IMG/VR virus record: IMGVR_UViG_3300005573_000154
Coordinates: 1-41,236 of that record
Strand: one strand, 5' to 3'
Length of the DNA: 41,236 nt
Positions 1 through 41,236 of this stretch are shown here, piece after piece. The notes below the pieces were generated by a model. The model saw only the letters and a program-made list of their open reading frames with translations. It was not told the DNA's origin and ran no database searches. Within the stretch, counting starts at the first letter, position 1, and the number at the start of each line of letters is the position of its first letter. The translations under genes were made by a program, and so were the position numbers.

Positions 1-392
1 TACACGTGTAAGCCTTTGTGTGGGCTTTTTTTGGCTATTGGGCTTGTTTTTGCGGGTTTTTTGTGTTTTGTGTGATGTGTGCGTATGGTGTGTTTTGTTG
101 TGCTTGTGTGTATGCTTTGGGGGGGTATAGGGTTTATGGTGATGCCTACATGTGTAGGCTTATTTGGGCTTAGTGTGATAAGTGTATGCGTGTGTATGTG
201 ATTGTGCTTGTAGTTGGTGAACAAGATGAGGAAACAATTAGAGAATGGGGCTATTGGGCTGATAATGGGGTTGAGAATAGGGTTCAGGCTAAGGCCATAA
301 AGCAAAGAGAGGATAGGGAAAAGCGTTAGGAATAGGGGGATTAAAGCATTAGGATAAAACAATAAGAGGGCTTAAAAAAATAAAGAAGATAG
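1..392 (+). repeat. Left inverted terminal repeat (392 bp)
   Basis: 1-392 is the reverse complement of 40845-41236, with the first mismatch at 393. It starts with the palindrome TACACGTGTA and is non-coding and G/T-rich. Confidence 0.97.
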
Positions 393-541
393 GGCTTTAA
401 TTGTTAAAGTAGATGGAGCTTTAAGCATTAAAGTAGGGGGGGCTTAAAGCATTAAAGTTTGGGGAACTTTAAGCATTAAAGTAGATGGAGCTTAAAACAT
501 TAAAGAAACACATAGAGAAAAGAGGACTTCAATTATTAAAG
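371..541. repeat. Cluster 1 of palindromic CTTTAA-N3-TTAAAG sites (7 copies)
   Basis: Copies start at 371, 395, 419, 443, 467, 491 and 527 (spacings 24 x5, then 36). Confidence 0.9.
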
Positions 542-991
542 TAGCGCATAATAAGCTTTTAGAAAAGGTTATTTATGGGCTTTATGCATATAATACTATA
601 TGTAATAATATGCAAAAGACCCAAAACTAAGATCTTATTTATAAAGTTTTCTAATTCCTGGAGGATTATCTAATATTTAAAGCTTTGTTTTCGCCGCATT
701 TTGCGATTAAGGCCTAAATGTATCATGATGAGTTTAGCGAGTTTTTCAAGGATTTTAGGGGTTTTATGGGATTAAGGTTTATATGTCTCTCAAGTGCATT
801 ATCTTTTGCGGAAAAAGGTGATGGAAAAATGAATGCGAGATGCGTTTTAGAGGAAAGAGCCAGAGAGGCCGTAAAAGTAGTTAAGGGAATAATCTTTCAG
901 CCAATATCTGAGAGAGAGAACGCTAGAGCTAGAGCGGATTAAAGAAACTCCTCTCCTCTTTTTTTATGTTTTGAATTGGGGGGATAAAAAA

Positions 992-2287
992 ATGGAGGCT
1001 CGAGTAATTGGGTCTTGGTATTTGATTGATGTGTTGAGAAGTATAGACATTAACAATAGGCTAGCGATTTTGCTATACCATTATCTGAGAAGGGAAAAAG
1101 GTAAAGTGATAAAGCTTTTTACCAATAGAGTGCATTATGAGATATTTAAGCAATTGTGGAATAAGCCGCTAGCGATATACGTTTCTAGAAACTATGTTGT
1201 TCTTCAGTTTCAAGGAGGAAGTAGATCTCATTTTTACGTTATCGGAATTAATACTGATAAGAGGCTTTTCATAAACAAGATTAGAGACTTTGATAATTAT
1301 GGGGCTAGAATTATTTGCGAATATCATGATGATTTTGATAAAGAGGATGATTACAATATTCCGATATACTTAGTAGAGGATAAGAATATTTTCAGAGCAA
1401 TGGACTTTGAGGAGGATATTGAGAATAGCGAGGAGAAGGTGATCCCAAAATATCGCAAAGATGGAGATAGAGAACAAATGATAAGCTCTTATCGCATTCA
1501 AGGTGATCTAATACTAAGAGTTACTACTGAGGATATTTTCTTTGGGAACATAAGACAATTGGTTATAGAACAAGTTGATCAAATCTTGAATAGAGTTATA
1601 CTTTTGAGGATACAAAATGTTCTAGCTGATATAGGTATATCCTCGCAAATTGTTATAAGATTTAGGAGAGAGGCCTTAATGTTCCGAGCTTTTCCGAGAA
1701 ACACATCTCTGGAAGAAGAAGAATATTACCTTGGGAACTTAATTGAGATACTGAAAAGGAAATTGAATATCAGCGATATAGCTGAACGCATTAAGTTTGC
1801 TATAGGTTTTGATTCTGATACAATTGGATGTGATATAGCCATTCACTTGTTTAATGAGCGGGCGGAATTTGGACAAAGATTTGAGCCTACAATTATTAGG
1901 GCTTTAATTAGTTGGGAAACACTCCAGAAATTTGCGGATAAGATAATGAGCCAATTGAAATTAGAGCCTCAAGACAATATAATCTCGAGAGGCCGACATT
2001 TGATAAGATATTTTGGGCTTCCATCACGATTTACCATAATGGCTAAACTTCCAAATGCCAATATGGCAAAGGAAGAATATATCATCCCAATAAATATGGA
2101 TGTTTTGCATATTATGAAGGGAAAAATATATTTGTATCATCCAGAACATAGTCATTTAACAATTGATATTGCGCAAAACCTAGCGGCTGAAGTAAATTCA
2201 ATTCCACTAGATGATGATTTTGAGGAGAGAATGAATTATTACGCATTAAAGCTACTACCGGATTCAAGACAATTAACGCTTTTTTAA
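992..2287 (+). CDS. Hypothetical protein (~431 aa), AT-rich gene
   Basis: Long ORF; ATG at 992 follows a GGGGGA RBS; T-tract downstream; no recognisable motif. Confidence 0.85.
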   Translation: MEARVIGSWYLIDVLRSIDINNRLAILLYHYLRREKGKVIKLFTNRVHYEIFKQLWNKPLAIYVSRNYVVLQFQGGSRSHFYVIGINTDKRLFINKIRDFDNYGARIICEYHDDFDKEDDYNIPIYLVEDKNIFRAMDFEEDIENSEEKVIPKYRKDGDREQMISSYRIQGDLILRVTTEDIFFGNIRQLVIEQVDQILNRVILLRIQNVLADIGISSQIVIRFRREALMFRAFPRNTSLEEEEYYLGNLIEILKRKLNISDIAERIKFAIGFDSDTIGCDIAIHLFNERAEFGQRFEPTIIRALISWETLQKFADKIMSQLKLEPQDNIISRGRHLIRYFGLPSRFTIMAKLPNANMAKEEYIIPINMDVLHIMKGKIYLYHPEHSHLTIDIAQNLAAEVNSIPLDDDFEERMNYYALKLLPDSRQLTLF

Positions 2288-2330
2288 ACCCCTTTTTCTT
2301 TTTTTCCGTTTTTTTCTTTTCCTCATTTTT
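2288..2330 (+). terminator. Oligo-T archaeal-type terminator
   Basis: CCCCTTTTTCTTTTTTTCCGTTTTTTTCTTTT directly after the stop codon. Similar C-then-T tracts follow other genes (about 6056, 7325, 8525, 23900). Confidence 0.6.
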
Positions 2331-2590
2331 GCTTTTTGGGCTTTAGCGTTTAGCGTTTTTTGGGATATTTGGCTTTTGGCTTATGGGGGGGCTTAAGGGG
2401 CTTTCTAGCTTTCCCGCAATTTTCTAGCACTTATTTGCGATAAGCCGGTCGAGCTTAGTCTAGGCTTTTGGATTTTTTTGCGGCTTATGCTTTTCGAGCT
2501 TCGAGCTTTTCGAGGCTTCGAGGCTTCAGGCTTTTCGAGCCAGTTGAGTTCGAGCTAGTTGGGGGGATGATGGGGGGCTGAAGTGTGGAG

Positions 2591-2917
2591 CTTTAAGAAT
2601 TAAAGTAGCGTATGTGCTGGATTGATGTTGGCACGGGGCTTTAATTGTTAAAGTAGCGTGTGTTGGGGGAATTCTAGCCTAGGGGGCTTAAAGCATTAAA
2701 GTAACTGATGCGGATAAGCCTGAGGATAATGGGGCTTTAATTGTTAAAGTTACTTCCACTTTGATCATTAAAGTTAGGCATGGGTTAGAGTTGTGCTATT
2801 GGGGGGCTTTGATTGTTAAAGTGGTCTGATGGGGGCATAGCATCCTACCCCGGGCTTTGATGATTAAAGAAACGCATATTGATTAGGCTGAGGATAATGG
2901 GGCTTTAATGCTTAAAG
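2591..2917. repeat. Cluster 2 of palindromic CTTTAA-N3-TTAAAG sites (8 copies)
   Basis: Copies start at 2591, 2639, 2687, 2735, 2759, 2807, 2855 and 2903 (spacings 48, 48, 48, 24, 48, 48, 48). Confidence 0.9.
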
Positions 2918-3114
2918 TAGCGCATATGTGTGTTGGCCTCGGTTGAGGAGCTGGCTTATAAGGCTTTGCCTCCCCCGCATTCTCGAGGCGAGCCTTAGAG
3001 AGATGGTTACATGTGTTTATATTTGTTGTCGTAATGCTTATATGGGTCTAGTGGTTTCTAGTCCCCTAAGGTTTATATTCTACACATGTATTGTTGCTTG
3101 TGAGGTGGTGCGGG

Positions 3115-3681
3115 ATGGTTGGTGGAAAGGTGCTTGTGTATGATCTTGTTTCGGAGAATCATCGAGCGTTAAGGAATACGCCTCTGTTTGGTAAAGTTCG
3201 AGCCGTCCGGATCAAGTGCACCAGCATGTTGTATAAGCTTGGCATACCTTGCACTGAGAGCGTTATACTGATAAACTCTAGCCATGCTGAGAGGATTAGT
3301 GAGACCATCGAGATGGTTAGGGAGCTTTATGAAGATGTTTTACATGAGGTTAATAATGCGCTAGGCGTAAGGCTTCCTGAGCCGGTTATTAAGGTGCTTG
3401 ATATAACTCAAGATCAGTATCAGGTTTTCCGAGATCTCGCTGAGAGAAGACTAAGGGAATCAATTGATGGCCAAATAGATAGAGTCTCGATGATTATCGA
3501 GACGGTTGCGGATCAGTCTGATCAAAATAAGAGGAGGAGCATTATACATAGCCTTAAGAAGCTTAAGAAGGAATGGGTTAGAATCAGAAATAGCTGTTTA
3601 GAAATTGGCATAAATCTCGAGGATGAGATTAACTATTTGCTTGATTTGATTGATCAGGCGATAAATGCGCTTTATAGCTGA
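3115..3681 (+). CDS. Hypothetical protein, possible Cas2/VapD-like ferredoxin N-terminal domain plus coiled coil
   Basis: ATG at 3115 after GAGGTG RBS and GGTTTATAT promoter. The pattern VLVYDL...LYKLGIPCTESVIL resembles the Cas2/VapD/PaaX-type 'vvYD...L...G...q.SV' motif. C-terminus is helical. Confidence 0.7.
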   Translation: MVGGKVLVYDLVSENHRALRNTPLFGKVRAVRIKCTSMLYKLGIPCTESVILINSSHAERISETIEMVRELYEDVLHEVNNALGVRLPEPVIKVLDITQDQYQVFRDLAERRLRESIDGQIDRVSMIIETVADQSDQNKRRSIIHSLKKLKKEWVRIRNSCLEIGINLEDEINYLLDLIDQAINALYS

Positions 3682-3698
3682 TTTCAGGAGGGGTCTTT

Positions 3699-5267
3699 AT
3701 GGAGCCGAGCTTTGGAATAGAGTTTGAATTTGATCTTATCCTGAAGAATGGCCGTAGGATTAGGGATGTTGCGCCACGTGCTAGGCGGTATGTTTATGGA
3801 TGGGATTATCAAGATGATCATACGTGTGCAGTAGAACTTAGGTCTCCCGTGTTCCGAGGTCTTGATCACGCTGTCAGCGAGATTGAGAGGCAGTTTAACT
3901 ATTGGTGTGATGTTTTCCAAGATGTTGCTCCATACCCGTATAGCGTTAATGGCCGAAGTCTAGGCATGCATATACATATTGGCTTACCCAATAGATGCCT
4001 ACACTATCACGAGGTTGATGTTGTTGGTAAGAGCGTCGCTAACGTTTATCCATTCCTAGCCGCTTTACAATGCCAGCCTGTTCCAAGCGAGAGGATACTC
4101 AGGAGCGCTTACCTCAGGCCATTATGGGCTTACGATTACGAAATAACTGACGATGACCATTATGCTGAGATTAATTTTAATGCCATTGGAACGGTTGAGT
4201 TTAGGATCTTTGACGCTAATGTTCCACAAGTTGCATTAACAAATGCGTGGATCATGCGGGAGATAGCTAAAGTTATGCTTGAGAATCAAAATTCAGATGT
4301 TGGTGTTAATCGAGAGAGATATAGGCATGATAGGAATATGGCGATTAGGTATGGCCTTAAAGCCCTAAATATTCTAAACTATTTGCAAATGATCAAAGAT
4401 ATGATAGGAAATGTTGCCATTCCTAGTTATCCATTTATCCGTGAGTTGCTATATCTTGCCGTGAAGTATCGCATGAATGCATGGGATATTATGAGAGCTG
4501 TAACGCAATCGCTTGGGACTAAAGAATTTGAATATTTCAGGGCTATGTTCAAGAATCCAAGAGACTTTATGTCTAATGTTATGTCGGTTATCAATAATTC
4601 TATGCATGATGTTGTTGATGAGCGATGTAAACAGATTATTTTAGATGCGCTTGAAAATTCTAGAAATCTAAATACTCTGGATGATCTGATTGCATTGGCT
4701 AGAACATTTGCGCCAGAAGTTCCCTCGATTTACGTGATACCGTTCCATTCAAAGAATCTACCGAGCCGAAGCTATGTTAAGAGGTGCATAGACCTGCACT
4801 ATTATCGTGTGTGTAGAATTAACGAGGTTGATAATACTCCATACGATGATGTAGCTAGTAGGATACATTACCTTATGAGGCATCACGGGGACGGATTTGT
4901 AAACGTGCTTAGCCCCGAGGATGTGATCAATAGGCCTGAGCGGTTCTATGTTTTCGTGGTGCCTGATCCGGATAATAGGCGTGAGGTTGTTCTAGGATGC
5001 ATAGCTGTCAGAATGTCCACAGGAGAGATTTCGAGCCTAGTTGTTGATAGGAGATATAGGCGCCTTGGAATCGCCAAGATTCTGATAAAAACCGTTATGC
5101 AAGTATTTGATCTGCATTATAGGAATTCATCGAGGCCGATTTTGCACGGATACGTTAAGAAGAAGAATGAGCCGATGATTAATTTGCTTAGAAGCATGGG
5201 CTTCGTGATTGAGCCGTTTAATCAGGATGTGTATAGGTTTAGGGTTGCTGTGAAGGAGAGTGATTAG
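3699..5267 (+). CDS. Putative amidoligase (glutamine-synthetase-like COOH-NH2 ligase) fused to a C-terminal GNAT acetyltransferase
   Basis: Ligase motifs FGIEFE, VELRSP, GMHIHIG and TVEFRIFD. C-terminal SSLVVDRRYRRLGIAKILI and NEPMINL match GNAT motifs A and B. Confidence 0.85.
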   Translation: MEPSFGIEFEFDLILKNGRRIRDVAPRARRYVYGWDYQDDHTCAVELRSPVFRGLDHAVSEIERQFNYWCDVFQDVAPYPYSVNGRSLGMHIHIGLPNRCLHYHEVDVVGKSVANVYPFLAALQCQPVPSERILRSAYLRPLWAYDYEITDDDHYAEINFNAIGTVEFRIFDANVPQVALTNAWIMREIAKVMLENQNSDVGVNRERYRHDRNMAIRYGLKALNILNYLQMIKDMIGNVAIPSYPFIRELLYLAVKYRMNAWDIMRAVTQSLGTKEFEYFRAMFKNPRDFMSNVMSVINNSMHDVVDERCKQIILDALENSRNLNTLDDLIALARTFAPEVPSIYVIPFHSKNLPSRSYVKRCIDLHYYRVCRINEVDNTPYDDVASRIHYLMRHHGDGFVNVLSPEDVINRPERFYVFVVPDPDNRREVVLGCIAVRMSTGEISSLVVDRRYRRLGIAKILIKTVMQVFDLHYRNSSRPILHGYVKKKNEPMINLLRSMGFVIEPFNQDVYRFRVAVKESD

Positions 5268-5269
5268 CC

Positions 5270-6052
5270 ATGTGCGGGATAGCCGGGGTTTATGGTGTTA
5301 ATGCGTTAAGGCTATCATTGATGATTACGTTGGCGCAAATTAACCGAGGCACTAGGGGGACTGGATTAGCGTGGATCAACCATAACAGGATTAAGGTGTT
5401 GAAGGAGCCGATTCATCCGGTTAAATTCTTCAAGAAGCATTATGATAGGCTTGAGTGGAAGGTTAAGGTTGCTGTTGCGCATAATAGACAGCCATCACGT
5501 GGAGGGGTTACGTATCAGAATACGCATCCATTTACAGACTGTAAGGGTAGATTCGCACTCGTTCATAATGGCTCTTGCATGTTCGATAATAACATAGTGT
5601 CTAAGATAAAGAGGGAGCATATGGTATTGGGAGAGACCGATAGCGAGATAATCACGCATCTTCTCGAGGATCTGTATGAGGAGCATGGAGACATGGTTAG
5701 CGCTATTGAGGCGCTATTTGATACGGATTTCTCTGGAGCTATTCTAGTGCTGACGAGAGACGGTAAAATCTATGGCGCTAGGGATGGCGTGATGCCACTA
5801 CACTACTGTAAGACTAATACACATGTCTTACTGGCATCAGAGGCCTCTGCGATTGAGGCGATACTAGACACGAACGCCAAGATTGAGGCATTGAAGATAC
5901 AGCAAATAATTGAGGTTGATGGCGGTAGGATAGAGATACACGGGGAAGGTATAGAGGAGGCGCCAGCACGTTATTATTATTATCCATATGCCTATGCATC
6001 AAGGCGGGCTAGCTCCCCCTATTATCCCTGGTATTATGATTGGGAAGACTGA
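5270..6052 (+). CDS. Class II (Ntn) glutamine amidotransferase
   Basis: N-terminal MCGIAG with catalytic Cys, plus NRG, HNR, NTHPF, HNG and TDSE motifs. Confidence 0.92.
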   Translation: MCGIAGVYGVNALRLSLMITLAQINRGTRGTGLAWINHNRIKVLKEPIHPVKFFKKHYDRLEWKVKVAVAHNRQPSRGGVTYQNTHPFTDCKGRFALVHNGSCMFDNNIVSKIKREHMVLGETDSEIITHLLEDLYEEHGDMVSAIEALFDTDFSGAILVLTRDGKIYGARDGVMPLHYCKTNTHVLLASEASAIEAILDTNAKIEALKIQQIIEVDGGRIEIHGEGIEEAPARYYYYPYAYASRRASSPYYPWYYDWED

Positions 6053-6142
6053 AGCCCCTTCTTTTTTTATTTTTTAGGTTTACACGTGTAGCTTTGCTTC
6101 TAGTGTATGGGTTTATGAGTAATTGAATATGTCCTAGGGGGG

Positions 6143-6289
6143 CTTAAAGAATTAAAGAAAAGCATAGAGATAAGGGAGCTTTAAGTATCAAAGTGACGGA
6201 TAGAATAAGCCGATAACAATATGGGGCTTTAAAAATTAAAGTAACGGATAGAATTGGGCTTATTGATGATGGGGCTTAAAGCATTAAAG
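6143..6289. repeat. Cluster 3 of palindromic CTTTAA-N3-TTAAAG sites (4 copies)
   Basis: Copies start at 6143, 6179, 6227 and 6275 (spacings 36, 48, 48). Confidence 0.9.
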
Positions 6290-6343
6290 TAACATGAGAG
6301 ATGAGCCATCTAGGGTAATACTCCTAAGGCTTATGTCATGTAT

Positions 6344-6362
6344 GGTTTATATGGTGCTTATG
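6344..6362 (+). promoter_or_regulatory. Conserved viral promoter GGTTTATATGGTGCTTATG
   Basis: TATA box plus conserved downstream element, about 45 nt before the ATG at 6390. Near-identical copies at 7496 and 8613. Confidence 0.75.
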
Positions 6363-6389
6363 CGCTATACCTATTGAGGTGAGGCGGGT

Positions 6390-6968
6390 ATGGTGGAGGA
6401 GTGGGATGAAAAAGTTAGGGAGGCGGCTAAGGCAATATTGGCGCATAGAAACGAGATTGAGGAGCTGATACGGATTTACAGGGATTTGCCTATTGTGTAT
6501 GTGTGTCCGTTTTGCGGCTATATCAGTAGGGAGCCGATGAATAGGGAGATAAAGGCGGAAGTGTATTATCGTGGTTGGCCATATGAAGATGAGTGGATTA
6601 CGGAGGTTATTGGTTTCTGTTTTTGTTCTAGGTGTGGAGCGACTCCGGAGAATTGCAAATATTTCTTTGGGTATGTTAAGGATGGTGAGAAGGTGTTGCA
6701 GATAAATAGCGATGACTTGGATAAGGTGAGGGCTAGGAGCCTTAAGGTTATGACGAGGGAGTATAAGGCGGCTGTCGAGAGGATAAAAGCGATACTAGCC
6801 GATGAATTGAATCGCATACGGGAGAGTGCTGACGAGATAGTTTATTGTGCATCTTCCGGAGAATGTTATTGTGTTGAGGAGATGCCTGAGGATGTAGGGA
6901 GGCTGGTGATGACACTTTACTGCCTAATCAAAGATCCGCCTGAAATGGTTGATGAGGAGGTGATTTGA
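6390..6968 (+). CDS. Zn-finger protein
   Basis: CPFC and CSRC pairs; GAGGTGA RBS. Confidence 0.8.
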   Translation: MVEEWDEKVREAAKAILAHRNEIEELIRIYRDLPIVYVCPFCGYISREPMNREIKAEVYYRGWPYEDEWITEVIGFCFCSRCGATPENCKYFFGYVKDGEKVLQINSDDLDKVRARSLKVMTREYKAAVERIKAILADELNRIRESADEIVYCASSGECYCVEEMPEDVGRLVMTLYCLIKDPPEMVDEEVI

Positions 6969-6969
6969 T

Positions 6970-7323
6970 ATGGCCGGGTTCATTAATTTAACACCACATA
7001 AGGTAACCATTTATTCTAGGGATGGCAAAAAGATAATAGCAGAGATTCCTCCAAGCGGGCTAGTCGCAAGGGTTACGGTAACCTCTAGGATTGTAGGCGA
7101 GATAGCAGGGATTCCGGTCAGGAAAACGGAATATGGGGAGATAGAGAATTTGCCTGATCCGATGCCTGACACGTATTACATCGTCAGCACGGTGGTGTTG
7201 ATTGCGTTGAAGGAAAAAGGAATCAATAGGCCTGACGTTATTTCGCCGGACACCAACCCGGATTCCGTTATAAGGGATTCAGAAGGAAGGGTTATAGGGG
7301 TCAGGTTCTTCCAGACCCTATAA
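6970..7323 (+). CDS. Small NLTPH-motif protein; candidate Crn4-like ring nuclease / anti-CRISPR
   Basis: NLTPH...IPPSG.VARV...LP.P....YIVS...R.D...P....RD.EGR.IG pattern. The CDS is secure; the Crn4 assignment is from memory of the family motif and is unverified. Confidence 0.55.
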   Translation: MAGFINLTPHKVTIYSRDGKKIIAEIPPSGLVARVTVTSRIVGEIAGIPVRKTEYGEIENLPDPMPDTYYIVSTVVLIALKEKGINRPDVISPDTNPDSVIRDSEGRVIGVRFFQTL

Positions 7324-7495
7324 AACCCCCCACTTTTTTCCTGTTTTTGGTTCTGTTTTTTATCTCTTGAAGTAGTGGTTAGGCCATTTATCTCTGTAAC
7401 TACACGTGTAATTCCATCTTTAGGGTATGAGCCCATAGACGAGCCGACATAGACGAGCTATTTCCGGTATTACTCTCGAGGTTTGTGGTGCATAT

Positions 7496-7514
7496 GGTTT
7501 ATATGGCGCTTATG
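7496..7514 (+). promoter_or_regulatory. Conserved viral promoter GGTTTATATGGCGCTTATG
   Basis: One mismatch to the 6344 copy; upstream of the ATG at 7543. Confidence 0.75.
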
Positions 7515-7542
7515 CACAGTATCTGTCGAGGTGGATAGGAGT

Positions 7543-8521: not shown

Positions 8522-8612
8522 AAACCCCCTCTCCTTCTTTTTTCATCCTAGCCTACACATGTAGAAAAGACGAGCCAATAACGGTATGACCGTTTTTGTG
8601 TTGGGTGTATAA

Positions 8613-8631
8613 GGTTTATATGGTGCTTATG
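8613..8631 (+). promoter_or_regulatory. Conserved viral promoter GGTTTATATGGTGCTTATG
   Basis: Identical to the 6344 copy. Confidence 0.75.
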
Positions 8632-8656
8632 TGTTCTCATTATCGAGGTGGTTGAG

Positions 8657-11400: not shown

Positions 11401-11493
11401 ATGATTAAATGAATGTGCAAGGTGTTTATAAATTTTCTCTTTACGAAAAATTTTTATGAGGGCTTATTATTTATTATTGCGAGGTGGGGTGGT

Positions 11494-11793
11494 GTGCCCG
11501 GTAGTAGTTTACTTGATGCGGTTTTGAACCGTGAGCGGATTAGGATTATTCGCTTGCTTGTAAGGAAAAAGATGTATCCTTTGCAGATTTCGAAGAAGTT
11601 GAATCTCAGCCATTCAGATGTTGCGTATCATCTTTCAGTTCTGCATGATGCCGGTATTGTTAAGCGTGAAGTTGGCAGGACTGGCGAGGGTAGGCTTGCG
11701 TATTTTTATGACATTGATCGGCCTAGGCTTAAGCACATATTGTATGAAGTCCAGGCAATTATAAACGGCATTCTTGACGAGCTTGGGGAGTAG
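11494..11793 (+). CDS. ArsR-like winged-HTH regulator
   Basis: NRERIRIIRLL...ISKKLNLSHSDVAYHLSVLHDAGIV; GTG start after GAGGTGG. Confidence 0.85.
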   Translation: MPGSSLLDAVLNRERIRIIRLLVRKKMYPLQISKKLNLSHSDVAYHLSVLHDAGIVKREVGRTGEGRLAYFYDIDRPRLKHILYEVQAIINGILDELGE

Positions 11794-15096: not shown

Positions 15097-15456
15097 CTAT
15101 TCTTCCTTCATGCCGTCCATGATGAAGTTCGTTATCGCCAGCCTGATGTATTCGGATCTGTTCCTGATTCCTTTCTTTTGCATGTCCATCTTCATTAGCG
15201 CTAGCAATCCTTTTGGGATCTTTAGGCTGACGAATACCATGTTCGTGTCATCGTCATCGAATGCGAACTTTTTGACCGGGTTGTTGTCATTGGATTTTCC
15301 GCCATCCAAGATTGATAGCAACTTCATGTGTTCTTTCAAGCCTCTCTGGATTATGAATCGCAGGGCGGTATTGCGGTATCGGTAGAGCTTCATCCGCACC
15401 ATTTTATCAACTATTTGGACTATCGGCTCTGGGAGGTGTAGTGTTACTATTTGCAT
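15097..15456 (-). CDS. Tandem ribbon-helix-helix (CopG/MetJ-like) regulator
   Basis: Two RHH units (IVTLHLPEPIVQIVDKMV...YRNTALR; VSLKIPKGLLALM...NRSEYIRLAI). TAATG overlap with the upstream gene. Confidence 0.85.
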   Translation of the reverse strand: MQIVTLHLPEPIVQIVDKMVRMKLYRYRNTALRFIIQRGLKEHMKLLSILDGGKSNDNNPVKKFAFDDDDTNMVFVSLKIPKGLLALMKMDMQKKGIRNRSEYIRLAITNFIMDGMKEE

Positions 15457-15656
15457 TACTCCTTCACCTCCTCGACGCTCACACGTATAGTCCATCCTAT
15501 GACTTGGTCGCCGTAGCAGTCATTGCTCCAGAATGTCTCGTGCATTCCCTTGATCATGTCTAATGCTTCTTGAATTGTGTCACATTTCTTTATCCTGACG
15601 CTTCCATCCTCGCCGTCCAAGAATACGTCAAACTTCAATACCTTGATCTCGCCCAT
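15456..15656 (-). CDS. Small hypothetical protein
   Basis: Start at MGEIKV; stop overlaps the RHH start codon. Confidence 0.6.
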   Translation of the reverse strand: MGEIKVLKFDVFLDGEDGSVRIKKCDTIQEALDMIKGMHETFWSNDCYGDQVIGWTIRVSVEEVKE

Positions 15657-16044: not shown

Positions 16045-16452
16045 ATGGAAAACGAGTTCCTGAAACTATGGTCTGAGCTGGAGGAAATCGCCGACAGGGC
16101 TAGGCGTGAGGCTAGGGGCGTCGCCATCAAGGTATGCAACGTGATCAAGGAGAGGTATTGGGATCGCATCAAGGCTGTGGCCGAGAAGTATGGCCTTGAG
16201 CCGAAGCTTGGCATAGAGATCAATGGTAGTGATCCAATTAGCTATGTGCCGGTGCTGTATTTGATTTCCGAGGAGGTGCTGGCGCCGGAGCTGGTCGAGA
16301 ACCTTAAGGAGAATATCCATAGGGAGCTAGGGGCGTGGATCAGCGATGCAAGGCTACATGTGGTGTTGCTGACAAGGGATGCCAAGCGTTTCCTGAACCT
16401 GGAGCTGATCAAGAATAATGAAAAGAAGGGGGGTGAGGGTGATGGAAGCTGA
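16045..16452 (+). CDS. Hypothetical protein overlapping the tas-like gene start
   Basis: GAGGTGA RBS; promoter-like TTTTTAAGGTGCTTATG upstream; 3' end overlaps the ATG at 16442. Confidence 0.75.
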   Translation: MENEFLKLWSELEEIADRARREARGVAIKVCNVIKERYWDRIKAVAEKYGLEPKLGIEINGSDPISYVPVLYLISEEVLAPELVENLKENIHRELGAWISDARLHVVLLTRDAKRFLNLELIKNNEKKGGEGDGS

Positions 16453-17326
16453 GGCTGGAGGGATCCTAGTCTTCGATGACTGGAATGAACTGTGGAGGTT
16501 CATCGAGTCCCGGAAAGAATATGTTGCCATTGATAGGGCGAAGACTAAAGGGAATAAGACGGCGTATTTGGCTAGGCTGACGAACGACATATGTAGGCTT
16601 CCGGAGATCTTTAAGGGCAGTATGGCGCATCATTATAGCTTGGAAGGGTTTGCGAAGCTTGCCTTGATGCTGAGGAGGCAGAAGCAGAGCTTGGACGCCA
16701 TACGGAAAGAGTATGCTTGGCAGGATTGGGCTGTCGATGCTTTAAACCAGATTATTAAGCAACGTGAAGGGCTGATTGACGAGATATACGAGCATGTCGC
16801 TGTTCACCCGGTAGTCCAATGGGTTAAGCGGGTAAAAGGGCTTGGAAAGCATGATGCAATACTATTCTTGGGCTTTATTGATCCGCATATTGCGACCTCG
16901 GCGGGGAAGGCTTACAAGTATTGGTGCCTCGCAGGCCCCGAATCGAGGCTAAAGTCTGGTAGGAAAGCTGAGGGCAGGCCTATCCTTAGAGGCGAGGGGT
17001 TCTTCATGGCAAGCAGGATCTGGATGCGAGGCGATGAATATTACAAGCCGCTAGCTGAAGCAAAAAAGGCATATTATTTGGACAAGCTACCGCAAGATGA
17101 GAAAGGTAGAAATGCACATGCACATATCAGGGCATTGCTTTGGCTGGCCAGACTACTTGTTGGCCATGCTTGGGAGATGCATCGCAAGTTCGAGCGGTTG
17201 CCGATTAACCCGCATGCCAACCATATTCCGCCAAAGCCCGATGAAGATGCCGTTTTCGATAACGATAAGATCCTAAATGCGATAAGGAATGGCCTAAGGC
17301 TTCCGCCCGAGGCTGTCAAGGTTTAA
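16442..17326 (+). CDS. TIGR-associated (Tas-like) RNA-guided protein: IS110/Nop-like RNA-binding domain, coiled coil and short N-terminal domain
   Basis: HPVVQWVKRVKGLG...LGFIDP...SAGKAYKYWCL...HAHIRALLWLARLLVGHAW...LP resembles the IS110 C-terminal / Nop fold. Directly upstream of a dual-repeat array. ATG 16442 follows a GGTGAGGG RBS. Confidence 0.85.
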   Translation: MEAEAGGILVFDDWNELWRFIESRKEYVAIDRAKTKGNKTAYLARLTNDICRLPEIFKGSMAHHYSLEGFAKLALMLRRQKQSLDAIRKEYAWQDWAVDALNQIIKQREGLIDEIYEHVAVHPVVQWVKRVKGLGKHDAILFLGFIDPHIATSAGKAYKYWCLAGPESRLKSGRKAEGRPILRGEGFFMASRIWMRGDEYYKPLAEAKKAYYLDKLPQDEKGRNAHAHIRALLWLARLLVGHAWEMHRKFERLPINPHANHIPPKPDEDAVFDNDKILNAIRNGLRLPPEAVKV

Positions 17327-17350: not shown

Positions 17351-18310
17351 TGCGAGCTGGAAAACTTAGTGAGCTGTATGATGTAGCGAGCTACTCTTAA
17401 CAGTGAGCTAGATAGATGAGCGAGCTTAGGAAGAGAGTGAGCTGGATTAGGAAGCGAGCTTGAGAATTAAGGGAGCTTAATGCCAGAGCGAGCTTCTTCT
17501 AAAAGTGAGCTGGAACACATAGCGAGCTGGAAAGAAAAGTGAGCTACGCACGAAAGCGAGCTGGACTGTGAAGTGAGCTAAGTCTTTGGGCGAGCTTAAA
17601 ATCGGAGTGAGCTACGGGTTCCAGCGAGCATACCCCTGAAGTGAGCAACCTATCTGAGCGAGCTGATTTTTTAAGTGAGCTATGAGGCATAGCGAGCTAA
17701 ATTGTCCAGTGAGCTGAAGAGAAGAGCGAGCTGGTGGGTGAAGTGAGCTACAATATTTAGCGAGCTTTTTCTGAAAGTGAGCTGGAACACGGAACGAGCT
17801 ACAAGACGGAGTGAACTGCATTGTGTAGCGAGCTAGGATGATGAGTGAGCTGTTCATTGAAGCGAGCTGAGGAATAAAGTGAGCTATCTACTCAAGCGAG
17901 CCACGATAATGAGTGAGCAACCCTCGGGAGCGAGCTGAATGGCTTAGTGAGCAAATAGGTATAGCGAGCTGAGACGATAAGTGAGCTGGGACATAAAGCG
18001 AGCTGAAATAAAAAGTGAGCTAAATAAAAAAGCGAGCTATGAAATCTAGTGAGCTGTGGATTGAAGCGAGCTGTGAGCTTGAGGGAGCTACCAATACAAG
18101 CGAGCTGGAATCGTGAGGAAGCTAGGGGGAATAGCGAGCTTAAAATCTGAGTGAGCTGGAGTCTATAGCGAGCTTTGAATAAAAGTGAGCTACCTCAAGA
18201 AGCGAGCTATATGAAAGAGTGAGCTGGAGGAATGAGCGAGCTGAAATAGAAAGTGAGCTACGCAATAAAGCGAGCTTGAGAAGAAAGTGAGCTATCCCGT
18301 CAAGCGAGCT
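17351..18310 (+). ncRNA. TIGR-type tandem interspaced guide RNA array: 28 units of 34 nt (AGCGAGCT-N9-AGTGAGCT-N9)
   Basis: 57 8-nt repeats at an exact 17-nt period from 17351 to 18303, alternating AGCGAGCT / AGTGAGCT with a few variants; 56 distinct 9-nt spacers; adjacent to the Nop/IS110-like gene. Confidence 0.92.
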
Positions 18311-18331: not shown

Positions 18332-18637
18332 TTAGATGTCTATGAACTGGTATTTGCCTTTGACCCTCATGAATGCTTTTGGCTTGACCTTGTATTCTCC
18401 TTCAAGGGCTTTGAGGTCTTTGAATCTTTCCGCTAGCCTGCTTTGATCCGCTGGGGCGTCTTCCTGTTTTACCTGTATCAGCCATATCTCCTTGTTTTCG
18501 GGGAATATTGCTATGATGTCTGCTGGGCCTAGGCTTCGGCTACTTCTTATGACAAGTGCCCCCATCTCCCTTAGCTTTTCACGGCAGAAGTGTTCCACCT
18601 GGTAGCCCTTCTTGTATGGCGTGGTTTTCTGGCTCAT
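18332..18637 (-). CDS. hjc: Archaeal Holliday junction resolvase (PD-(D/E)XK)
   Basis: KGYQVE...G..VIRS..S.GPADIIA...LIQVK; a typical rudiviral gene. Confidence 0.88.
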   Translation of the reverse strand: MSQKTTPYKKGYQVEHFCREKLREMGALVIRSSRSLGPADIIAIFPENKEIWLIQVKQEDAPADQSRLAERFKDLKALEGEYKVKPKAFMRVKGKYQFIDI

Positions 18638-19093: not shown

Positions 19094-19282
19094 CTATCTT
19101 ACCTTATGCCTCTCCACGTATTCCTTTAACGCCTCATTTATGACCAGCCAGATAGTCCTTACTGGTGTTCCATACTTGAAGGCGGCGATCAGGGCTAGCT
19201 CCCGGTAAACATCACTGTCTATCATGACGTGTTTCCTGACGTATTTTGCCTTGTCTTTTTGGGCAACTTTCTGAGCCGGCAT
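19094..19282 (-). CDS. RHH DNA-binding protein (similar to 15802-15987)
   Basis: KHVMIDSDVYREL...INEALKEYV. Confidence 0.85.
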   Translation of the reverse strand: MPAQKVAQKDKAKYVRKHVMIDSDVYRELALIAAFKYGTPVRTIWLVINEALKEYVERHKVR

Positions 19283-19620
19283 GCCTCAATCACCCTATGG
19301 GTATTATGGTTATTGTGCTATTTAAGCAATACGCCAATAAGTGATGGAAGTAATACCCATATGGGCGCCATAATTGTTCAAGGGTCTTGAGGTATGATCA
19401 AGTCCCTATACTTTAGCAGTGCCTCCACACCATACCACCTTATCATCTGATTCACGAATAGCCAAACATCCCTCATGGGAAGCCTTACCCTACCCAACCC
19501 ATCAACCACCTCATGGGATTTATGGTTATTGTGTTATTTAATCATTACCTGTATCGGTGCTAGAACTACACGTGTAATCCCACGCATGAAACAAAAAAAT
19601 AAAGAGGGGGGTTTTAGTTG

Positions 19621-20046
19621 CTAGAGGACTTCGTATAGTTCGGGGGTTATCATCTTGATTAGCTTGTTGGCTAGGAAGGCGTCAAACCATTTCTTGACCG
19701 TCCTGTCATCGGGGCCTCTGACGTTTGCTATCGCCATCAGGATATGCTTGCGGGGGATTTGCTGGCCGGGTATTATCGCTATGTATCCAAGATGCTCCTC
19801 TAGGAACTTCCTAACCTCTGCGAAGACCCTTCCAACCTTGGGCTGGGGGTTGGCCGCATTCAAAAGTTTGTGCGCTTCTTGCGTGTGCTGGGCGATCCAT
19901 ACCTTCATTGCCTGCTCGATCTCATGGCTCAAAACCCCGTGAAATCTGCCGTATTTCTGGAAAGCTACCCGCCTAAACTCCTCTAACACCTTCTTATCCA
20001 CATAGACATATATACCGGCTTTATTGGGAGGAAGCCTCGGCATCAT
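19621..20046 (-). CDS. RHH domain fused to a probable winged-helix domain
   Basis: IYVYVDKKVLEEFRR...LSHEIEQAM; C-terminal DDRTVKKWFDAFLANKLIK. Confidence 0.75.
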   Translation of the reverse strand: MMPRLPPNKAGIYVYVDKKVLEEFRRVAFQKYGRFHGVLSHEIEQAMKVWIAQHTQEAHKLLNAANPQPKVGRVFAEVRKFLEEHLGYIAIIPGQQIPRKHILMAIANVRGPDDRTVKKWFDAFLANKLIKMITPELYEVL

Positions 20047-23489: not shown

Positions 23490-23867
23490 ATGCCGCTCTA
23501 CCGAGACGGCATAATGATGTTCGAGAAGTATTCGAAGAAGTATAACCCGACGGTAATCGGCACCAGGTTCACGGATGTCCAGGCCACAGCGCTAGCGAGG
23601 GCTCAGGCAGGCCTCAACAAGGTTGACACCATCAGGTCAATGGTCAGGGACTACCTAGACTCCAAGGGGATCACGGGCGGCGTCAGGGCGCTCTACCTGG
23701 CGTTCGCCCTGAAGCTGTGGGCCCACGTTGAGAGGCAGGGAAACACCGCATCCAACAAGATTGCAGACGGCCTAATCGCCTACTTCAACAAGGCCTACGG
23801 GCTTGATACTACGCTACTCACCGACATCGCCAACGCAATCATCGTGAAGCCATCGGCTACACCGTAA
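23490..23867 (+). CDS. Major capsid protein, SIRV2/Adnaviria fold
   Basis: KYSKKYNPTV, GITGGVRALYLAFALKL and GLIAYFNKAYGLDTTLL match the SIRV2 MCP pattern (NPTV...GITGPNRAIYQGFGLKV...GLKGYYISAFNANPQVL). Strong RBS and terminator. Confidence 0.9.
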   Translation: MPLYRDGIMMFEKYSKKYNPTVIGTRFTDVQATALARAQAGLNKVDTIRSMVRDYLDSKGITGGVRALYLAFALKLWAHVERQGNTASNKIADGLIAYFNKAYGLDTTLLTDIANAIIVKPSATP

Positions 23868-26642: not shown

Positions 26643-26918
26643 ATGGAGACCAAATCCATCCTCATCCCCCCAATTTTTATGCAGATAGACGGCGTCACGG
26701 TAGAGCTAGTTGAGGTCAGCAAGCACTTCCTAGCCCCAGACCAGCCATACTACATAGCCTCAGTAAAGATTATATACAAGGGGATACACAGCCGGGTCTT
26801 CCCAATCTTCGCAAAAGATATAACAGACCTGAAGAACAAGCTCAAGGTGGAAATAAACAAGGTGAAATTCATAGAATACTCATGCGGACTTGAGGAGGTG
26901 AAGAAGCTCATATGCTAG
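26643..26918 (+). CDS. Hypothetical protein
   Basis: GGGGTGA RBS; overlaps the start of the large gene. Confidence 0.75.
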   Translation: METKSILIPPIFMQIDGVTVELVEVSKHFLAPDQPYYIASVKIIYKGIHSRVFPIFAKDITDLKNKLKVEINKVKFIEYSCGLEEVKKLIC

Positions 26919-32900: not shown

Positions 32901-33178
32901 TGATAGACGCCCTCCCACTCCCACAGGCAGACAAACAGGAGCTAAAGGCCATGTGGGAGGAATACATCAAGAATAGGCCGGTCAAATCAGAGGCAAGGCT
33001 ATACATCACACAGCTATCAAACGCCTATGCAGAAGGCCTGATAAGCGATGCGGACTTCTCCAGAGAACTAGAATCAATGAAGCAATGGGGATTCTCCGAC
33101 AACGAGATAATGTTCTATAAAGCAAGGGCCGCACTCATGAAGGCAAGAAAGCTCAAGCTACCGCTAATGTGGGAGTAG
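26912..33178 (+). CDS. Large (2088 aa) repeat-rich structural protein, probably terminal structure/fibre
   Basis: 21 x 15-aa repeats (VADFFTKTVPQYFGM), Trp-rich amphipathic repeats, and four 112-aa C-terminal repeats (EYIPTPSMLATLSEY). Confidence 0.8.
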   Translation: MLDDEPFQLTPEEIEAISKAVADAIAQNIQTIQNTITNNLHVYEIIPEDKIEELIDLDLIASSVHGVTDILGQISGWFQSVIDNARKLIVSGIQGFINTYVMPAINTIKDWFSKTVPEVGRAFGDLVGIISDKITAPLRSVANFFTVDIPNYFRKVTDFFTKDIPSFFSKVVDFFTRDLPGYFSKVADFFTRELPSRFSTVIDFFTKTLPQHFGSVIDFFTKTLPQHFGMVADFFTKTMPQYFGTVVNFFTKTLPDNFNIVINFFTKTIPQYFGLVADFFTKTVPQYFGMVADFFTKTIPQYFGMVTDFFTNTVPKYFGLLADFFTKTVPQYFGMVDDFFTKTVPQYFGLVVDFFTKTVPQFFSMVMDFFTKTVPQYFTLVADFFTKTVPQYFGMVADFFTKMVPQYFGMVADFFTKTIPQYFGMVADFFTKAVPQYFGMVGAFFTETLPKWIEGMRKGVTDFIDLLMKLPSRAADILMTVGKFLFDTIIDPMIKGINTYIIAPLAGGVERMSGILNSVGAAFQGFMNAILKFPEWFQRNLVEPFLSGLGKIGEWIWNALPGWVKDALNAITNFFTKDLVNFFTKTLPSFFDTLSKGFQDFIKDPLGWFQRNLVEPLVEGLNAIGQWIWNALPDWMKNAITAIQDFFTKTVPEFFSSIAKGIQEFFKDPLGWLKTHLVEPIIQGFNALGQWIWNALPDWLKEGLEAIGNVFKAIAEGVVNFFKDPLRTIMKGFEALWSGIQWLGQKIWEGLQWLGGIIFKGLVTAGEWLWNAIKGGVEWFIKALTDFGTTIVNTITGAVVGGLKAIGESLIKMTVDFVEWLLGASQKCATHVGPAITDLAVALVKPFGVIVPTQLGAPLVALVDEVKLAKNISQSITSLGKLIVLWGGTIATSQALATGAWAILHGIATPLDKVRIVTPFKIKAKAKGKGKFHPAGVGAEGGAEGGAEAGISVPLTINLGLFIRHIASEIRKHADTIGRSLAYGFGIWITQPMVRLASSIFRNMLVVELPTLEMITESMRRHMPHEKFKDILNKSREYLALYGYSDTVIQWLTSTVDEEGMAITITDRFGRPRKIPVSLMYNLPSPSDVARMVIRDVIINIDDLKKMFMMRGMSEDIGILYYLLHFRYPPPERLWIFYTRGISGLLWARISGTEARDVERDVKASGGFLPRSPEELNFEASTLENLLKTYLKWHDFARFAYAEGWPSDNLIVMDTLADIPTKIDQRWLVRFGLYQLLSERGVGYKSAVSEFCEKVVESASKGKVILDLTNFCRTLQATGLHPYWVPITAVAETINAITDERTLLRTGVMSLYKEGFLDSSAVSRLGQGIVMTSFNVAYFDPVSNTWKTGYINVPLRYLGMEAQLIGLRAIMDRALDILRDIQRDALTAYQEFIITDESEFKSKLSNIINSINSIYEQEYTKIIGESPPEDLKLKYVESYYSAYLKSLEIWREVFTTRRIRMWTQRWLGWVMYRAAYGTVTKEDIQKLVSLMGDYAKLTEKEVQFIQEVLNIMYGMARREVAAEYLPTPSTMATLSEYLTLDTGLVKKILTERGIPEEWQNIWLRYISVKPIKSDAKSLLSAHVRAFRYGAITREALDAFISTLPQYGFTDKEIDIVRRIAELEEMILEARENRREYIPTPSMLATLSEYVALDPSMIQKVFDARNVPPEWRAIWSQYISVRPIADDVKALLSTYRRVLLYVKIPDEIAKQVLEYAKLIGFTDRELAILDLRNRLEEMLIEYRENRREYIPTPSMLATMSEYMTIPADLIQKVFEARHVPPEWQTIWMQYINIRPIVDDVRGLLSSYRRALIYVTLPDDIKKKVESYANTIGFTQTEWDILTLRVTLEELILEARENRREYIPTPMTLATLCEYLPEAREFFDDVVKARRIPTEWQKLWAKYIDLRPLIDDIKRYLSRAEQLYVRFMIKKDDFMKVLNEVAKNLGYTTTEVDFLLKVTEFERYANAWRELIGTVDRLVELSEYSPRASKYALGKVYEMIDALPLPQADKQELKAMWEEYIKNRPVKSEARLYITQLSNAYAEGLISDADFSRELESMKQWGFSDNEIMFYKARAALMKARKLKLPLMWE
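27332..28276 (+). repeat. 45-bp (15-aa) coding tandem repeat, 21 copies
   Basis: GACTTCTTCACCAA-type units every 45 nt. Confidence 0.9.
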
Positions 33179-40844: not shown

Positions 40845-41236
40845 CTATCTTCTTTATTTTTTTAAGCCCTCTTATTGTTTTATCCTAATGCTTTAATCCC
40901 CCTATTCCTAACGCTTTTCCCTATCCTCTCTTTGCTTTATGGCCTTAGCCTGAACCCTATTCTCAACCCCATTATCAGCCCAATAGCCCCATTCTCTAAT
41001 TGTTTCCTCATCTTGTTCACCAACTACAAGCACAATCACATACACACGCATACACTTATCACACTAAGCCCAAATAAGCCTACACATGTAGGCATCACCA
41101 TAAACCCTATACCCCCCCAAAGCATACACACAAGCACAACAAAACACACCATACGCACACATCACACAAAACACAAAAAACCCGCAAAAACAAGCCCAAT
41201 AGCCAAAAAAAGCCCACACAAAGGCTTACACGTGTA
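40845..41236 (-). repeat. Right inverted terminal repeat (392 bp)
   Basis: Reverse complement of 1-392; ends in AAGGCTTACACGTGTA. Confidence 0.97.

Follow-up and report, generated by a model that had tools for sequence, protein, structure and literature searches.

Positions modulo 12 are kept by palindromic sites, and by almost every insertion or deletion, in a rod-shaped archaeal virus and its known relatives

The left arm of a rod-shaped archaeal virus genome (IMG/VR record IMGVR_UViG_3300005573_000154; the window is the whole 41,236-nucleotide stretch analysed, positions 1 to 41,236 of the record) contains three intergenic clusters of a short palindromic site. An initial annotation, made from the sequence alone, had described nineteen copies locked in one 12-bp register, and this raises the questions of whether the register is real, whether it is a property of the sites alone, and what could impose it on a double-stranded DNA genome.

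The observation itself was confirmed. The pattern CTTTAANNNTTAAAG gave 8 exact matches where 0 are expected, and 23 matches where 2.1 are expected when up to 2 mismatches were allowed. A 21-nt weight matrix separated exactly 19 left-arm copies of GGGG-CTTWRA-N3-TTAAAG-TA, scoring 16.8-32.5 bits, from everything else, which scored 12 bits or less and consisted mostly of the same palindromes read on the other strand. All 19 are on the + strand and start at 11 mod 12, and the gaps between clusters are 2064 = 172x12 and 3240 = 270x12. The only other good hit is the mirror image of copy 371 in the right inverted terminal repeat (ITR), and a hit at 668 is weak (7-10 bits). No comparable copy lies out of phase, although a degenerate, out-of-phase copy, read by eye, lies in the ITR near 337. 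Two further points correct the initial annotation: the element is directional, with GGGG on its 5' side, TA on its 3' side and a right half-site much better conserved than its left; and a register "measured from the left end" cannot be read from window coordinates, because the same genome exists as a 41,400-bp contig (Ga0207433_10002105) with 82 more bases at each end. The coordinates of the arrays and of associated features are listed in Table 1.

Table 1. Features of the 41,236-bp window; L-numbers denote metagenomic relatives.
Position	Strand	Feature	Further observations
371..541	+	Cluster 1: 7 copies of the 15-bp palindromic core (starts 371, 395, 419, 443, 467, 491, 527)	Spacings of 24 bp five times, then 36 bp; first copy inside the ITR
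2591..2917	+	Cluster 2: 8 copies (starts 2591, 2639, 2687, 2735, 2759, 2807, 2855, 2903)	Spacings of 48, 48, 48, 24, 48, 48, 48; in L139, L126 and L133 the whole cluster is a 336-bp (7x48) presence/absence difference
6143..6289	+	Cluster 3: 4 copies (starts 6143, 6179, 6227, 6275)	Spacings of 36, 48, 48; absent from the 93%-identical relative L051, with a net difference of 192 bp = 16x12
40852..40866	-	Mirror image of copy 371	In the right ITR
1..392	.	Left ITR	100% complementary to 40845-41236; the window lacks at least 82 bp of each terminus
40845..41236	.	Right ITR	
567..578	+	TATA-like promoter element GGTTATTTATGG	About 35 bp downstream of the last copy of cluster 1; the module of last copy plus this element is conserved in L006, L113, L048, L126 and L139
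776..784	+	Promoter-like GGTTTATAT	Upstream of a small ORF and of the 431-aa gene
3070..3078	+	Promoter-like GGTTTATAT	Downstream of cluster 2, upstream of genes 3091-6052
6344..6352	+	Promoter-like GGTTTATAT	64 bp downstream of cluster 3, within an 83-nt promoter/leader module repeated at 7451 and 8568
992..2287	+	431-aa gene between clusters 1 and 2	Its family shows only 4-aa or 8-aa indels (12 or 24 bp)
3091..6052	+	Genes between clusters 2 and 3	A 196-aa ORF, a 522-aa protein with a C-terminal GNAT domain, and a 260-aa class-II glutamine amidotransferase-like protein
23490..23867	+	Major capsid protein (MCP) of SIRV2 type	By homology its dimer is expected to cover 12 bp of A-form DNA (PMC5517147)
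11413..11793	+	ArsR-type winged-helix protein	Candidate binder of the palindromes (inferred only); conserved in L139
15097..15495	-	Protein with a weak C-terminal ribbon-helix-helix match	Second candidate binder (inferred only)

The window is a near-complete linear genome of rudivirus type. Its MCP matches Pfam Sulf_coat_C (1.3e-18) and the PDB entries 6wq0 (1.2e-10) and 3j9x, the SIRV2 virion (4.4e-8), and is 31-33% identical to rudiviral MCPs. Only one ORF matched coat-protein families in the Pfam scans, which cannot exclude a divergent second MCP. Each MCP dimer covers 12 bp of A-form DNA in SIRV2 and AFV1 (PMC5517147), and 12-bp indels have been described in rudiviruses and lipothrixviruses (PMC4390879); both of these literature facts, on which the initial annotation had relied, were corroborated, whereas the same footprint is inferred for the present virus by homology only.

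The arrays carry signs of selection on the sites. Between orthologous arrays the core is 92.5% identical and the spacers 78% (window against relative L125), or 83% against 65% (window against relative L099), and spacer lengths are unchanged, although spacers within cluster 2 are only 39% alike. The core can flip (GCA or TGC in the centre) while the flanks stay in place. The three arrays are paralogous: the 36-bp unit at 486-522 pairs with the one at 6138-6174, including its spacer, and the regions around the last copies of clusters 1 and 2 also pair. Copy number varies among relatives, and clusters 2 and 3 are absent from some, but in about a dozen metagenomic relatives all of roughly 40 further spacings between good copies are 24, 36, 48 or 60 bp. 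The few out-of-phase copies are degenerate (L139 at 349, L113 at 241, and the window near 337). Phase-locking is not automatic for repeats in this genome, since another dispersed palindrome, TACACGTGTA, is not phase-locked.

The register is not private to the arrays. Out-of-phase copies of equal quality, or relatives with indels other than multiples of 12 between the clusters, had been named in advance as refuting a "rule of twelve"; no such copy exists in the window, and indels against relatives in and around the gaps between clusters are multiples of 12. Net shifts against the left-arm relatives include +12, +24, -60, +192, +336, +444 and +468. Against a syntenic 39.5-kb relative, 15 of 21 shifts are multiples of 12, and 93% of aligned bases over window positions 524-22049 keep one phase despite 21 indels of up to 1.5 kb (P = 2e-12); the non-multiples form adjacent sets with net -1260, -300 and -1620, and an array of 17-bp period differs by exactly 204 = 12x17. 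Multiples of 12 also account for 20 of 23 shifts in SIRV4/SIRV8, 16 of 20 in SIRV1/SIRV2 and 10 of 12 in AFV6/AFV3, but for only 2 of 37 in T3/T7 and 1 of 13 in the fuselloviruses SSV-RH/SSV-K1. Adjacent compensating sets of non-multiples were found in three genome pairs. Exceptions exist: SIRV1/SIRV2 carry three uncompensated 1-bp shifts and one of 529 bp, and the only right-arm relative (L136, window 26-41 kb) keeps no common phase, although its split ORFs may reflect either biology or assembly error. The 41,400-bp contig of the same genome is 12x3450 bp long, but assembly ends are not proven termini, and related contigs of 39,530 and 47,049 bp are not multiples of 12. No distinctive 12-bp periodicity in base composition was found once the arrays were masked (P = 8e-4, the same as for period 10), and the breakpoints of clean 12- to 72-bp indels show no common phase. 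The lattice therefore does not appear to guide where DNA is cut, which favours selection on net length but leaves the mechanism open.

The interpretation of the initial annotation, that these are capsid-phased nucleation, packaging or uncoating signals implying a "rule of twelve" on this arm, is thus supported in part. The rule is real, reaches at least 22 kb in this lineage rather than this arm only, and extends across three Adnaviria lineages, but nothing in the present evidence shows that the palindromes are capsid signals. The explanation favoured here, with moderate confidence, is that the arrays are regulatory protein-binding sites whose register is kept by the genome-wide constraint. 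The sequence comparisons establish three paralogous arrays of a 21-bp directional element with a 15-bp core of two-fold symmetry, as in a binding site for a protein dimer; their location next to the terminal repeat and about 35 to 165 bp upstream of TATA-like promoters, themselves predicted from sequence only, of rightward transcription units; and a 12-bp phase shared with the whole lineage and with the SIRV and AFV pairs. Because units share spacer sequence between clusters, the arrays were copied and then spaced in steps of 12 like everything else. What remains inferred is that the arrays are bound by a viral or host regulator and act as upstream sites for early left-arm genes, and that the virion causes the rule, selection keeping sequence in register with a lattice of MCP dimers that each cover 12 bp of A-form DNA. 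A homodimeric MCP would also fit a palindrome.

The regulatory reading has a parallel in the conserved regulatory sequences and the Aca8 winged-helix regulator at early genes of SIRV2 termini (PMC11065993), where repeated promoter modules precede small terminal genes and a virus-encoded regulator is predicted to bind. The motif described there is the core promoter itself (BRE plus TATA) and not an upstream tandem array of a 15-bp palindrome spaced in multiples of 12, and no Aca8 homologue was identified in the window, which nevertheless has repeated promoter modules and encodes a winged-helix protein. The register is analogous to the rule of six of paramyxoviruses, in which the genome is constrained to multiples of the nucleoprotein footprint and cis elements must keep their phase on the nucleocapsid; that rule concerns an RNA genome, a 6-nt footprint and template recognition by the polymerase, whereas here the genome is double-stranded DNA with an inferred 12-bp dimer footprint, and the palindrome arrays are only candidates for a cis element whose function would depend on its phase on the nucleocapsid.

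Twelve-bp indels in rudiviruses and lipothrixviruses have been known since 2004 (Peng et al. 2004; Vestergaard et al. 2008, as cited in PMC4390879) without an accepted cause, and the 12 bp per coat-protein dimer since 2015. The indels are described as small and "generally within ORFs" (PMC4390879), and one of the cited papers reportedly linked them to CRISPR pressure. In the genomes compared here the same quantum also governs non-coding DNA, repeat arrays and gene-scale differences of up to 3.5 kb, and deviations are compensated, so whole genomes stay in one register. No paper linking the indels to the 12 bp per MCP dimer was found in the literature searched, which did not include the original reports. 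The evidence linking the two, a pattern found in three Adnaviria lineages and not in two control virus groups, one of which infects Sulfolobus hosts, turns an oddity into a testable constraint on a double-stranded DNA genome. It gives a rule for engineering these viruses, in that insert lengths may matter, as well as a way to recognise Adnaviria genomes in metagenomes and a quality check on their assemblies. The arrays are a new cis element of a poorly known lineage of rod-shaped viruses from neutral hot springs, and the obvious place to ask whether sequence and capsid lattice are in register.

The alternative that survives best, though only as a tentative one, is that of the initial annotation: the palindromes would be high-affinity, two-fold-symmetric sites for the MCP homodimer that nucleate or set the phase of the lattice, or mark where uncoating starts, and the need to keep several nucleation clusters in register to avoid lattice faults would create the rule. 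In favour are the SIRV2-type MCP, the agreement of array spacings with the 12-bp footprint, the degeneracy of the few out-of-phase copies, the absence of phase-locking in the other dispersed palindrome, and the phase of the array relative to the ITR block, which is kept in lineages that share almost no genes with the window (L006 and L113, with shifts of 156, 5160 and 5856, all multiples of 12). Arrays are next to the termini and point inward at the right end of L136. A terminal array is present in most related contigs that reach a terminus, whereas clusters 2 and 3 are dispensable. Against it, clusters 2 and 3 are missing in relatives that still obey the rule, the constraint reaches 22 kb, far beyond the last array, the arrays lie just upstream of predicted promoters, the 15-bp core and 21-bp element are longer than one 12-bp footprint, and rudiviral MCP-DNA contacts are described as backbone contacts. 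SIRV and AFV genomes also obey the rule, in comparisons that did not include a scan for such arrays. The closest analogue of this model, the origin-of-assembly sequence of tobacco mosaic virus, likewise has an internal period equal to the coat-protein footprint, but is a single RNA hairpin locus essential for assembly, whereas here up to three labile DNA arrays lie in front of promoters and close relatives lack two of them. In its broadest form, which is doubtful but would explain the 20-year-old puzzle of 12-bp indels, the lattice of Adnaviria would be laid down in a fixed register relative to the sequence, the arrays would set or read that register by nucleation or uncoating, and any indel other than a multiple of 12 between phase-sensitive elements would be counter-selected.

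Mutational bias alone is unlikely. A slippage or "ruler" mechanism, or small mobile 12-bp elements, as first proposed for SIRV1 variants and later linked to CRISPR evasion, could make the register a passive product, and is consistent with the described 12-bp indels (PMC4390879), with the many shifts of exactly plus or minus 12 or 24 bp, and with the lack of a common breakpoint phase. However, presence/absence differences of hundreds to thousands of bp, including whole genes, are also multiples of 12 (-360, -1056, +480, -636, +324, -264, 3528, 3552), which a 12-bp slippage step does not explain. Non-multiples do occur but cancel locally (6 with -18, 6 with -450, 15 with -315), the signature of selection on the net; the 17-bp-period array changed by exactly 12 units, and fuselloviruses of Sulfolobus hosts lack the pattern.

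Still less likely is a role of the arrays in replication, terminus resolution or partition. They adjoin the ITR, arrays of dimer sites are typical of iterons and plasmid centromeres, and the right end of L136 carries a mirrored array; but clusters 2 and 3 are internal, at 2.6 and 6.1 kb, each in front of a predicted promoter and gene set, they come and go between close relatives, and no Rep, ParA or ParB-like gene was detected by Pfam and PHROG scans of the predicted ORFs.

Coincidence is very improbable: tandem-repeat origin could explain the phase within clusters, and the two in-phase gaps alone have a probability of only 1/144 in a pattern noticed after the fact, but spacings of 24, 36, 48 and 60 bp co-occur with diverged spacers of exact length, relatives differ by multiples of 12 in and between the clusters, and the genome-wide pattern has P of about 1e-12. 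A virus-borne mini-CRISPR array or another structured-RNA locus, loosely suggested by repeats of about 21 nt ending in TTAAAG at a 48-bp period, can be set aside, because there is no Rfam match at E up to 1 in positions 1-7000, the copies are degenerate rather than near-identical, 24-bp units leave only about 3 bp between 21-nt elements where unique spacers of about 26 bp or more would be expected, and the core is a protein-type palindrome with an unconstrained centre.

The 41,236-bp linear genome IMGVR_UViG_3300005573_000154 (about 46% G+C) has a perfect 392-bp inverted terminal repeat (ITR), and is also present as metagenome contig Ga0207433_10002105 of 41,400 bp, in which all three clusters of the palindromic element lie 82 bp further from the contig end; the window therefore lacks at least 82 bp at each terminus. 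The longer assembly is exactly 12x3450 bp, but assembly ends are not proven termini and this may be coincidence. One ORF encodes a major capsid protein (MCP) of the SIRV2 type, which matches Pfam Sulf_coat_C (1.3e-18) and PDB chains 6wq0 (1.2e-10) and 3j9x, the SIRV2 virion (4.4e-8), and is 31-33% identical to rudiviral MCP genes. The initial annotation was therefore correct in placing the genome in a rod-shaped archaeal virus with a SIRV2-like capsid.

The initial annotation's observation, that nineteen palindromes on the left arm share a single 12-bp register, holds in full. The bare pattern gives 8 exact matches where 0 are expected, and 23 matches with up to 2 mismatches where 2.1 are expected. 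A weight matrix built on the sites separates 19 left-arm copies (16.8-32.5 bits) from all other sequence (12 bits or less); all 19 are on the + strand and start at 11 mod 12, and the only other good copy is the ITR mirror of copy 371. However, the element is longer and less symmetric than first described. Its consensus is GGGG-CTTWRA-N3-TTAAAG-TA, with a G-run on the 5' side, a strongly conserved right half-site and a looser left one. The central three bases are free, and the core occurs in both orientations inside fixed flanks (GCA at 419, its complement TGC at 2903), so that it behaves as a true palindrome, the kind of site that a protein dimer binds.

Each array is followed by a TATA-like promoter element and a rightward gene set: cluster 1 by GGTTATTTATGG, then GGTTTATAT, a small ORF and a 431-aa gene; cluster 2 by GGTTTATAT, a 196-aa ORF, a GNAT-domain protein and an amidotransferase-like protein; and cluster 3 by GGTTTATAT and a 192-aa ORF. 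The predicted promoter and leader after cluster 3 form an 83-nt module that is found three times in front of successive small genes, its second and third copies without palindromes; the first two copies are 1152 = 96x12 bp apart and the third is 1117 bp further. This resembles the conserved regulatory sequences before early and anti-defence genes of rudiviruses, for which repeated regulatory modules in front of terminal early genes are described together with a winged-helix regulator (PMC11065993). Units are paralogous between clusters, spacer included: a 36-bp unit of cluster 1 pairs with one of cluster 3, and the regions around the last copies of clusters 1 and 2 share flanking sequence. The run of CGAGCT/CGAGGCTT repeats immediately upstream of cluster 2 recalls the GYGAGCT motif of a separate 17-bp-period array.

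Positions of features in the window (the last row refers to a relative)
Feature	Position	Description
Decayed palindrome copy	near 337	Out of phase; read by eye from the sequence
Paired 36-bp units	486-522; 6138-6174	Paralogous, spacer included
GGTTATTTATGG	567	TATA-like element after cluster 1
GGTTTATAT	776; 3070; 6344	Promoter-like elements after clusters 1, 2 and 3
CGAGCT/CGAGGCTT repeats	2461-2560	Immediately upstream of cluster 2
Adjacent gene pair	3699-6052	522-aa protein with C-terminal GNAT acetyltransferase domain; class-II glutamine amidotransferase-like protein
83-nt promoter and leader module	6299-6381; 7451-7533; 8568-8650	In front of successive small genes
17-bp-period array	17352-18293	About 1 kb, non-coding, between ORFs 16418-17326 and 18332-18637
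MCP	23490-23867	SIRV2 type
Giant ORF	26912-33178	2088 aa; 45-nt repeats at 27.3-28.2 kb and 336-nt repeats at 31.5-32.6 kb
549-aa protein	35156-36805	Right arm
Palindrome copy	40852	ITR mirror of copy 371
Palindrome TACACGTGTA	1; 6081; 7401; 15736; 19567; 20282; 21190; 27030; 33741; 37138; 41227	Plus 6 one-mismatch and 1 further exact copy
Mirrored array in L136 (Ga0527077_0624, 47,049 bp)	locus 19200-19709	Three palindrome copies just inside the right ITR

No DNA-level relative was found among 50,697 phage and archaeal-virus records. A motif-pair scan of IMG/VR returned only the window itself and an unrelated 8-bp satellite, single-protein and profile searches of IMG/VR for left-arm and right-arm relatives returned only the window, and a motif-pair scan of GTDB genomes found nothing. 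A motif-pair scan of metagenome contigs, together with contigs encoding homologues of window proteins, recovered about a dozen further arrays (designated L006, L113, L051/L042, L099, L118, L125, L126, L136, L139, L048, L024 and L019). Their architectures differ, for example 48-36-36-24-24-36-48 in L118 and 60-48-48-36 in L139, yet every spacing between good copies, roughly 40 in all, is 24, 36, 48 or 60 bp. Two copies are out of phase (L139 at 349 and L113 at 241), and both are degenerate. Contigs of the 431-aa family are short or carry only one cluster, and a syntenic 39.5-kb relative has only the terminal array, so the register between clusters is documented in the window alone. Between orthologous arrays the cores are better conserved than the spacers (92.5% against 78% for the window and L125; 83% against 65% for the window and L099), and spacers keep their exact length although they are only 39% alike within cluster 2.

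The arrays are labile. L051, which is 93% identical to window 2945-7254, has four copies instead of eight and lacks cluster 3, whereas L126, L133 (another left-arm relative) and the syntenic 39.5-kb relative lack cluster 2. In L136 an array lies at the right end in mirror orientation, so that in some relatives the arrays are at the right end and perhaps at both ends; the sequence of this contig also runs about 33 bases beyond the window's terminal TACACGTGTA. L006 and L113 share almost no protein with the window, yet they share the ITR, the array and the first promoter.

Indels between relatives that are not multiples of 12 had been named beforehand as evidence that would contradict a rule of twelve, and relatives were compared accordingly. 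The 431-aa protein encoded between clusters 1 and 2 has eleven full-length family members, all of whose indels are exactly 4 or 8 residues, at three sites. The GNAT family, at 50% identity or less, shows length differences that are not multiples of 4 aa, but it mixes many sources and start-codon calls and was not used. Genomes were then compared by ungapped BLAST blocks that were chained collinearly, each change of diagonal being recorded as a net indel free of alignment ambiguity. Against the short left-arm relatives the net changes include +12, +24, -24, -60, -72, +192, +204, +336, +444 and +468, and the few non-multiples cancel in pairs. Against positions 1-25,661 of the syntenic 39.5-kb contig Ga0453686_000131, 33 blocks cover window 524-22,049, and 15 of 21 diagonal changes are multiples of 12, including -360, -1056, +480, -636, +324, -264 and +936. 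The six others form three adjacent sets with net changes of -1260, -300 and -1620, all multiples of 12. Of the aligned bases, 93% keep one phase modulo 12, against 22-35% for moduli 9, 10, 11, 13 and 15 (P = 2e-12). The non-coding array of GYGAGCT motifs on a strict 17-bp period (spacings of 17, 34, 51, 68 bp and so on), which could be an origin or a protein-binding array, is conserved in this relative but is exactly 204 bp longer there, which is 12 units of 17 and the smallest length allowed by both periods.

The same procedure was applied to published genomes, with T3/T7 and a pair of fuselloviruses as controls.

Net indels and conservation of phase modulo 12 in published genome pairs
Pair	Shifts that are multiples of 12	Share of aligned bases in one phase
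SIRV4 / SIRV8	20 of 23 (including 3552, 516, -504, 540, -684, -948)	96%
SIRV1 / SIRV2	16 of 20 (including 3528)	47%
AFV6 / AFV3	10 of 12; the other two, 6 and -450, cancel	100%
T3 / T7 (control)	2 of 37	30%
SSV-RH / SSV-K1 (fusellovirus control)	1 of 13	26%

The method does not create the pattern, and the fuselloviruses, which also infect Sulfolobus, lack it. The pattern follows the virus realm whose capsid covers 12 bp of A-form DNA per MCP dimer (PMC5517147). Twelve-bp indels in these families are already known (PMC4390879), but nothing was found in the literature searched that extends them to kilobase events, describes compensation, or links them to the capsid repeat, although earlier mention, as in the original papers of 2004 and 2008, cannot be excluded.

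The one relative that covers window 26-41 kb is an exception. L136, about 93% identical over 26-35 kb, drifts through many phases; in that contig the 2088-aa ORF is split in three and the 549-aa ORF in two, and the small indels are not obviously homopolymer errors, so that either the rule lapses on the right arm of this lineage or the contig is unreliable. In SIRV4/SIRV8 and AFV6/AFV3 the rule spans almost the whole genome.

Gene lengths in the window are not enriched for multiples of 12 (13 of 54), and gene starts are uniform modulo 12, so the rule concerns changes between relatives and not the size of units. A second over-represented palindrome, TACACGTGTA, occurs 12 times exactly and 18 times with up to one mismatch, where 0.5 matches are expected even with one mismatch allowed; its copies lie at both ends of the window and in many intergenic regions, but share no phase modulo 12. 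They may be recombination or recognition sites, as specific recombination sites are reported for the neutrophile virus HAV1 (PMC4390879). The signal in base composition at period 12 beyond codon periodicity has P = 8e-4 after masking of the arrays, no better than period 10, and was not counted as evidence. Breakpoints of clean small indels have no common phase, which speaks against lattice-guided cutting. The constraint therefore acts on the net change in length between flanking sequences, and not on unit sizes or on where DNA breaks.

The analysis establishes the arrays and their register, their position in front of predicted promoters, selection on the half-sites, spacing in multiples of 12 across relatives, and genome-wide conservation of position modulo 12. 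It is only an inference that the arrays are binding sites for a dimeric regulator of left-arm, probably early, genes; that their common phase is inherited, the arrays being paralogous modules copied and modified only in twelves and kept so by the genome-wide constraint; and that this constraint comes from the 12-bp capsid lattice. Candidate binders of the palindromes, likewise inferred only, are the winged-helix protein encoded at 11413-11793 and a protein with a weak ribbon-helix-helix match at 15097-15495. The initial annotation's interpretation was thus supported in part: the rule that it implied is real and wider than proposed, but its stronger claim, that the palindromes themselves are capsid-phased signals, remains possible although unlikely. 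That claim would gain from the conserved phase between ITR and array in otherwise unrelated genomes and from the decay of out-of-phase copies, but it is weakened because two of the three clusters are dispensable and because the constraint extends far beyond the arrays. The net action of the constraint, together with local compensation, points to selection rather than a pure mutational "ruler", although a ruler may add to the many 12-bp and 24-bp events. A reading of the arrays as CRISPR or structured RNA was rejected, with no Rfam match at E up to 1 in window 1-7000.

Repeats are also found within coding sequence. The giant ORF holds about 20 tandem 45-nt (15-aa) repeats, four 336-nt repeats, and repeats spaced 168, 192 or 216 nt apart; all the non-45 spacings are multiples of 24, and 20x45 = 900 is also a multiple of 12. 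Two gene families offer possible clues to the hosts of this virus group. The GNAT protein has 78 homologues in hot-spring metagenomes, some of whose sources name Ignisphaera or Thermoproteota genomes, which hints at the host range or at gene exchange. Relatives of the 549-aa right-arm protein are annotated in bins named Candidatus Korarchaeota archaeon NZ13-K and Thermofilaceae archaeon.
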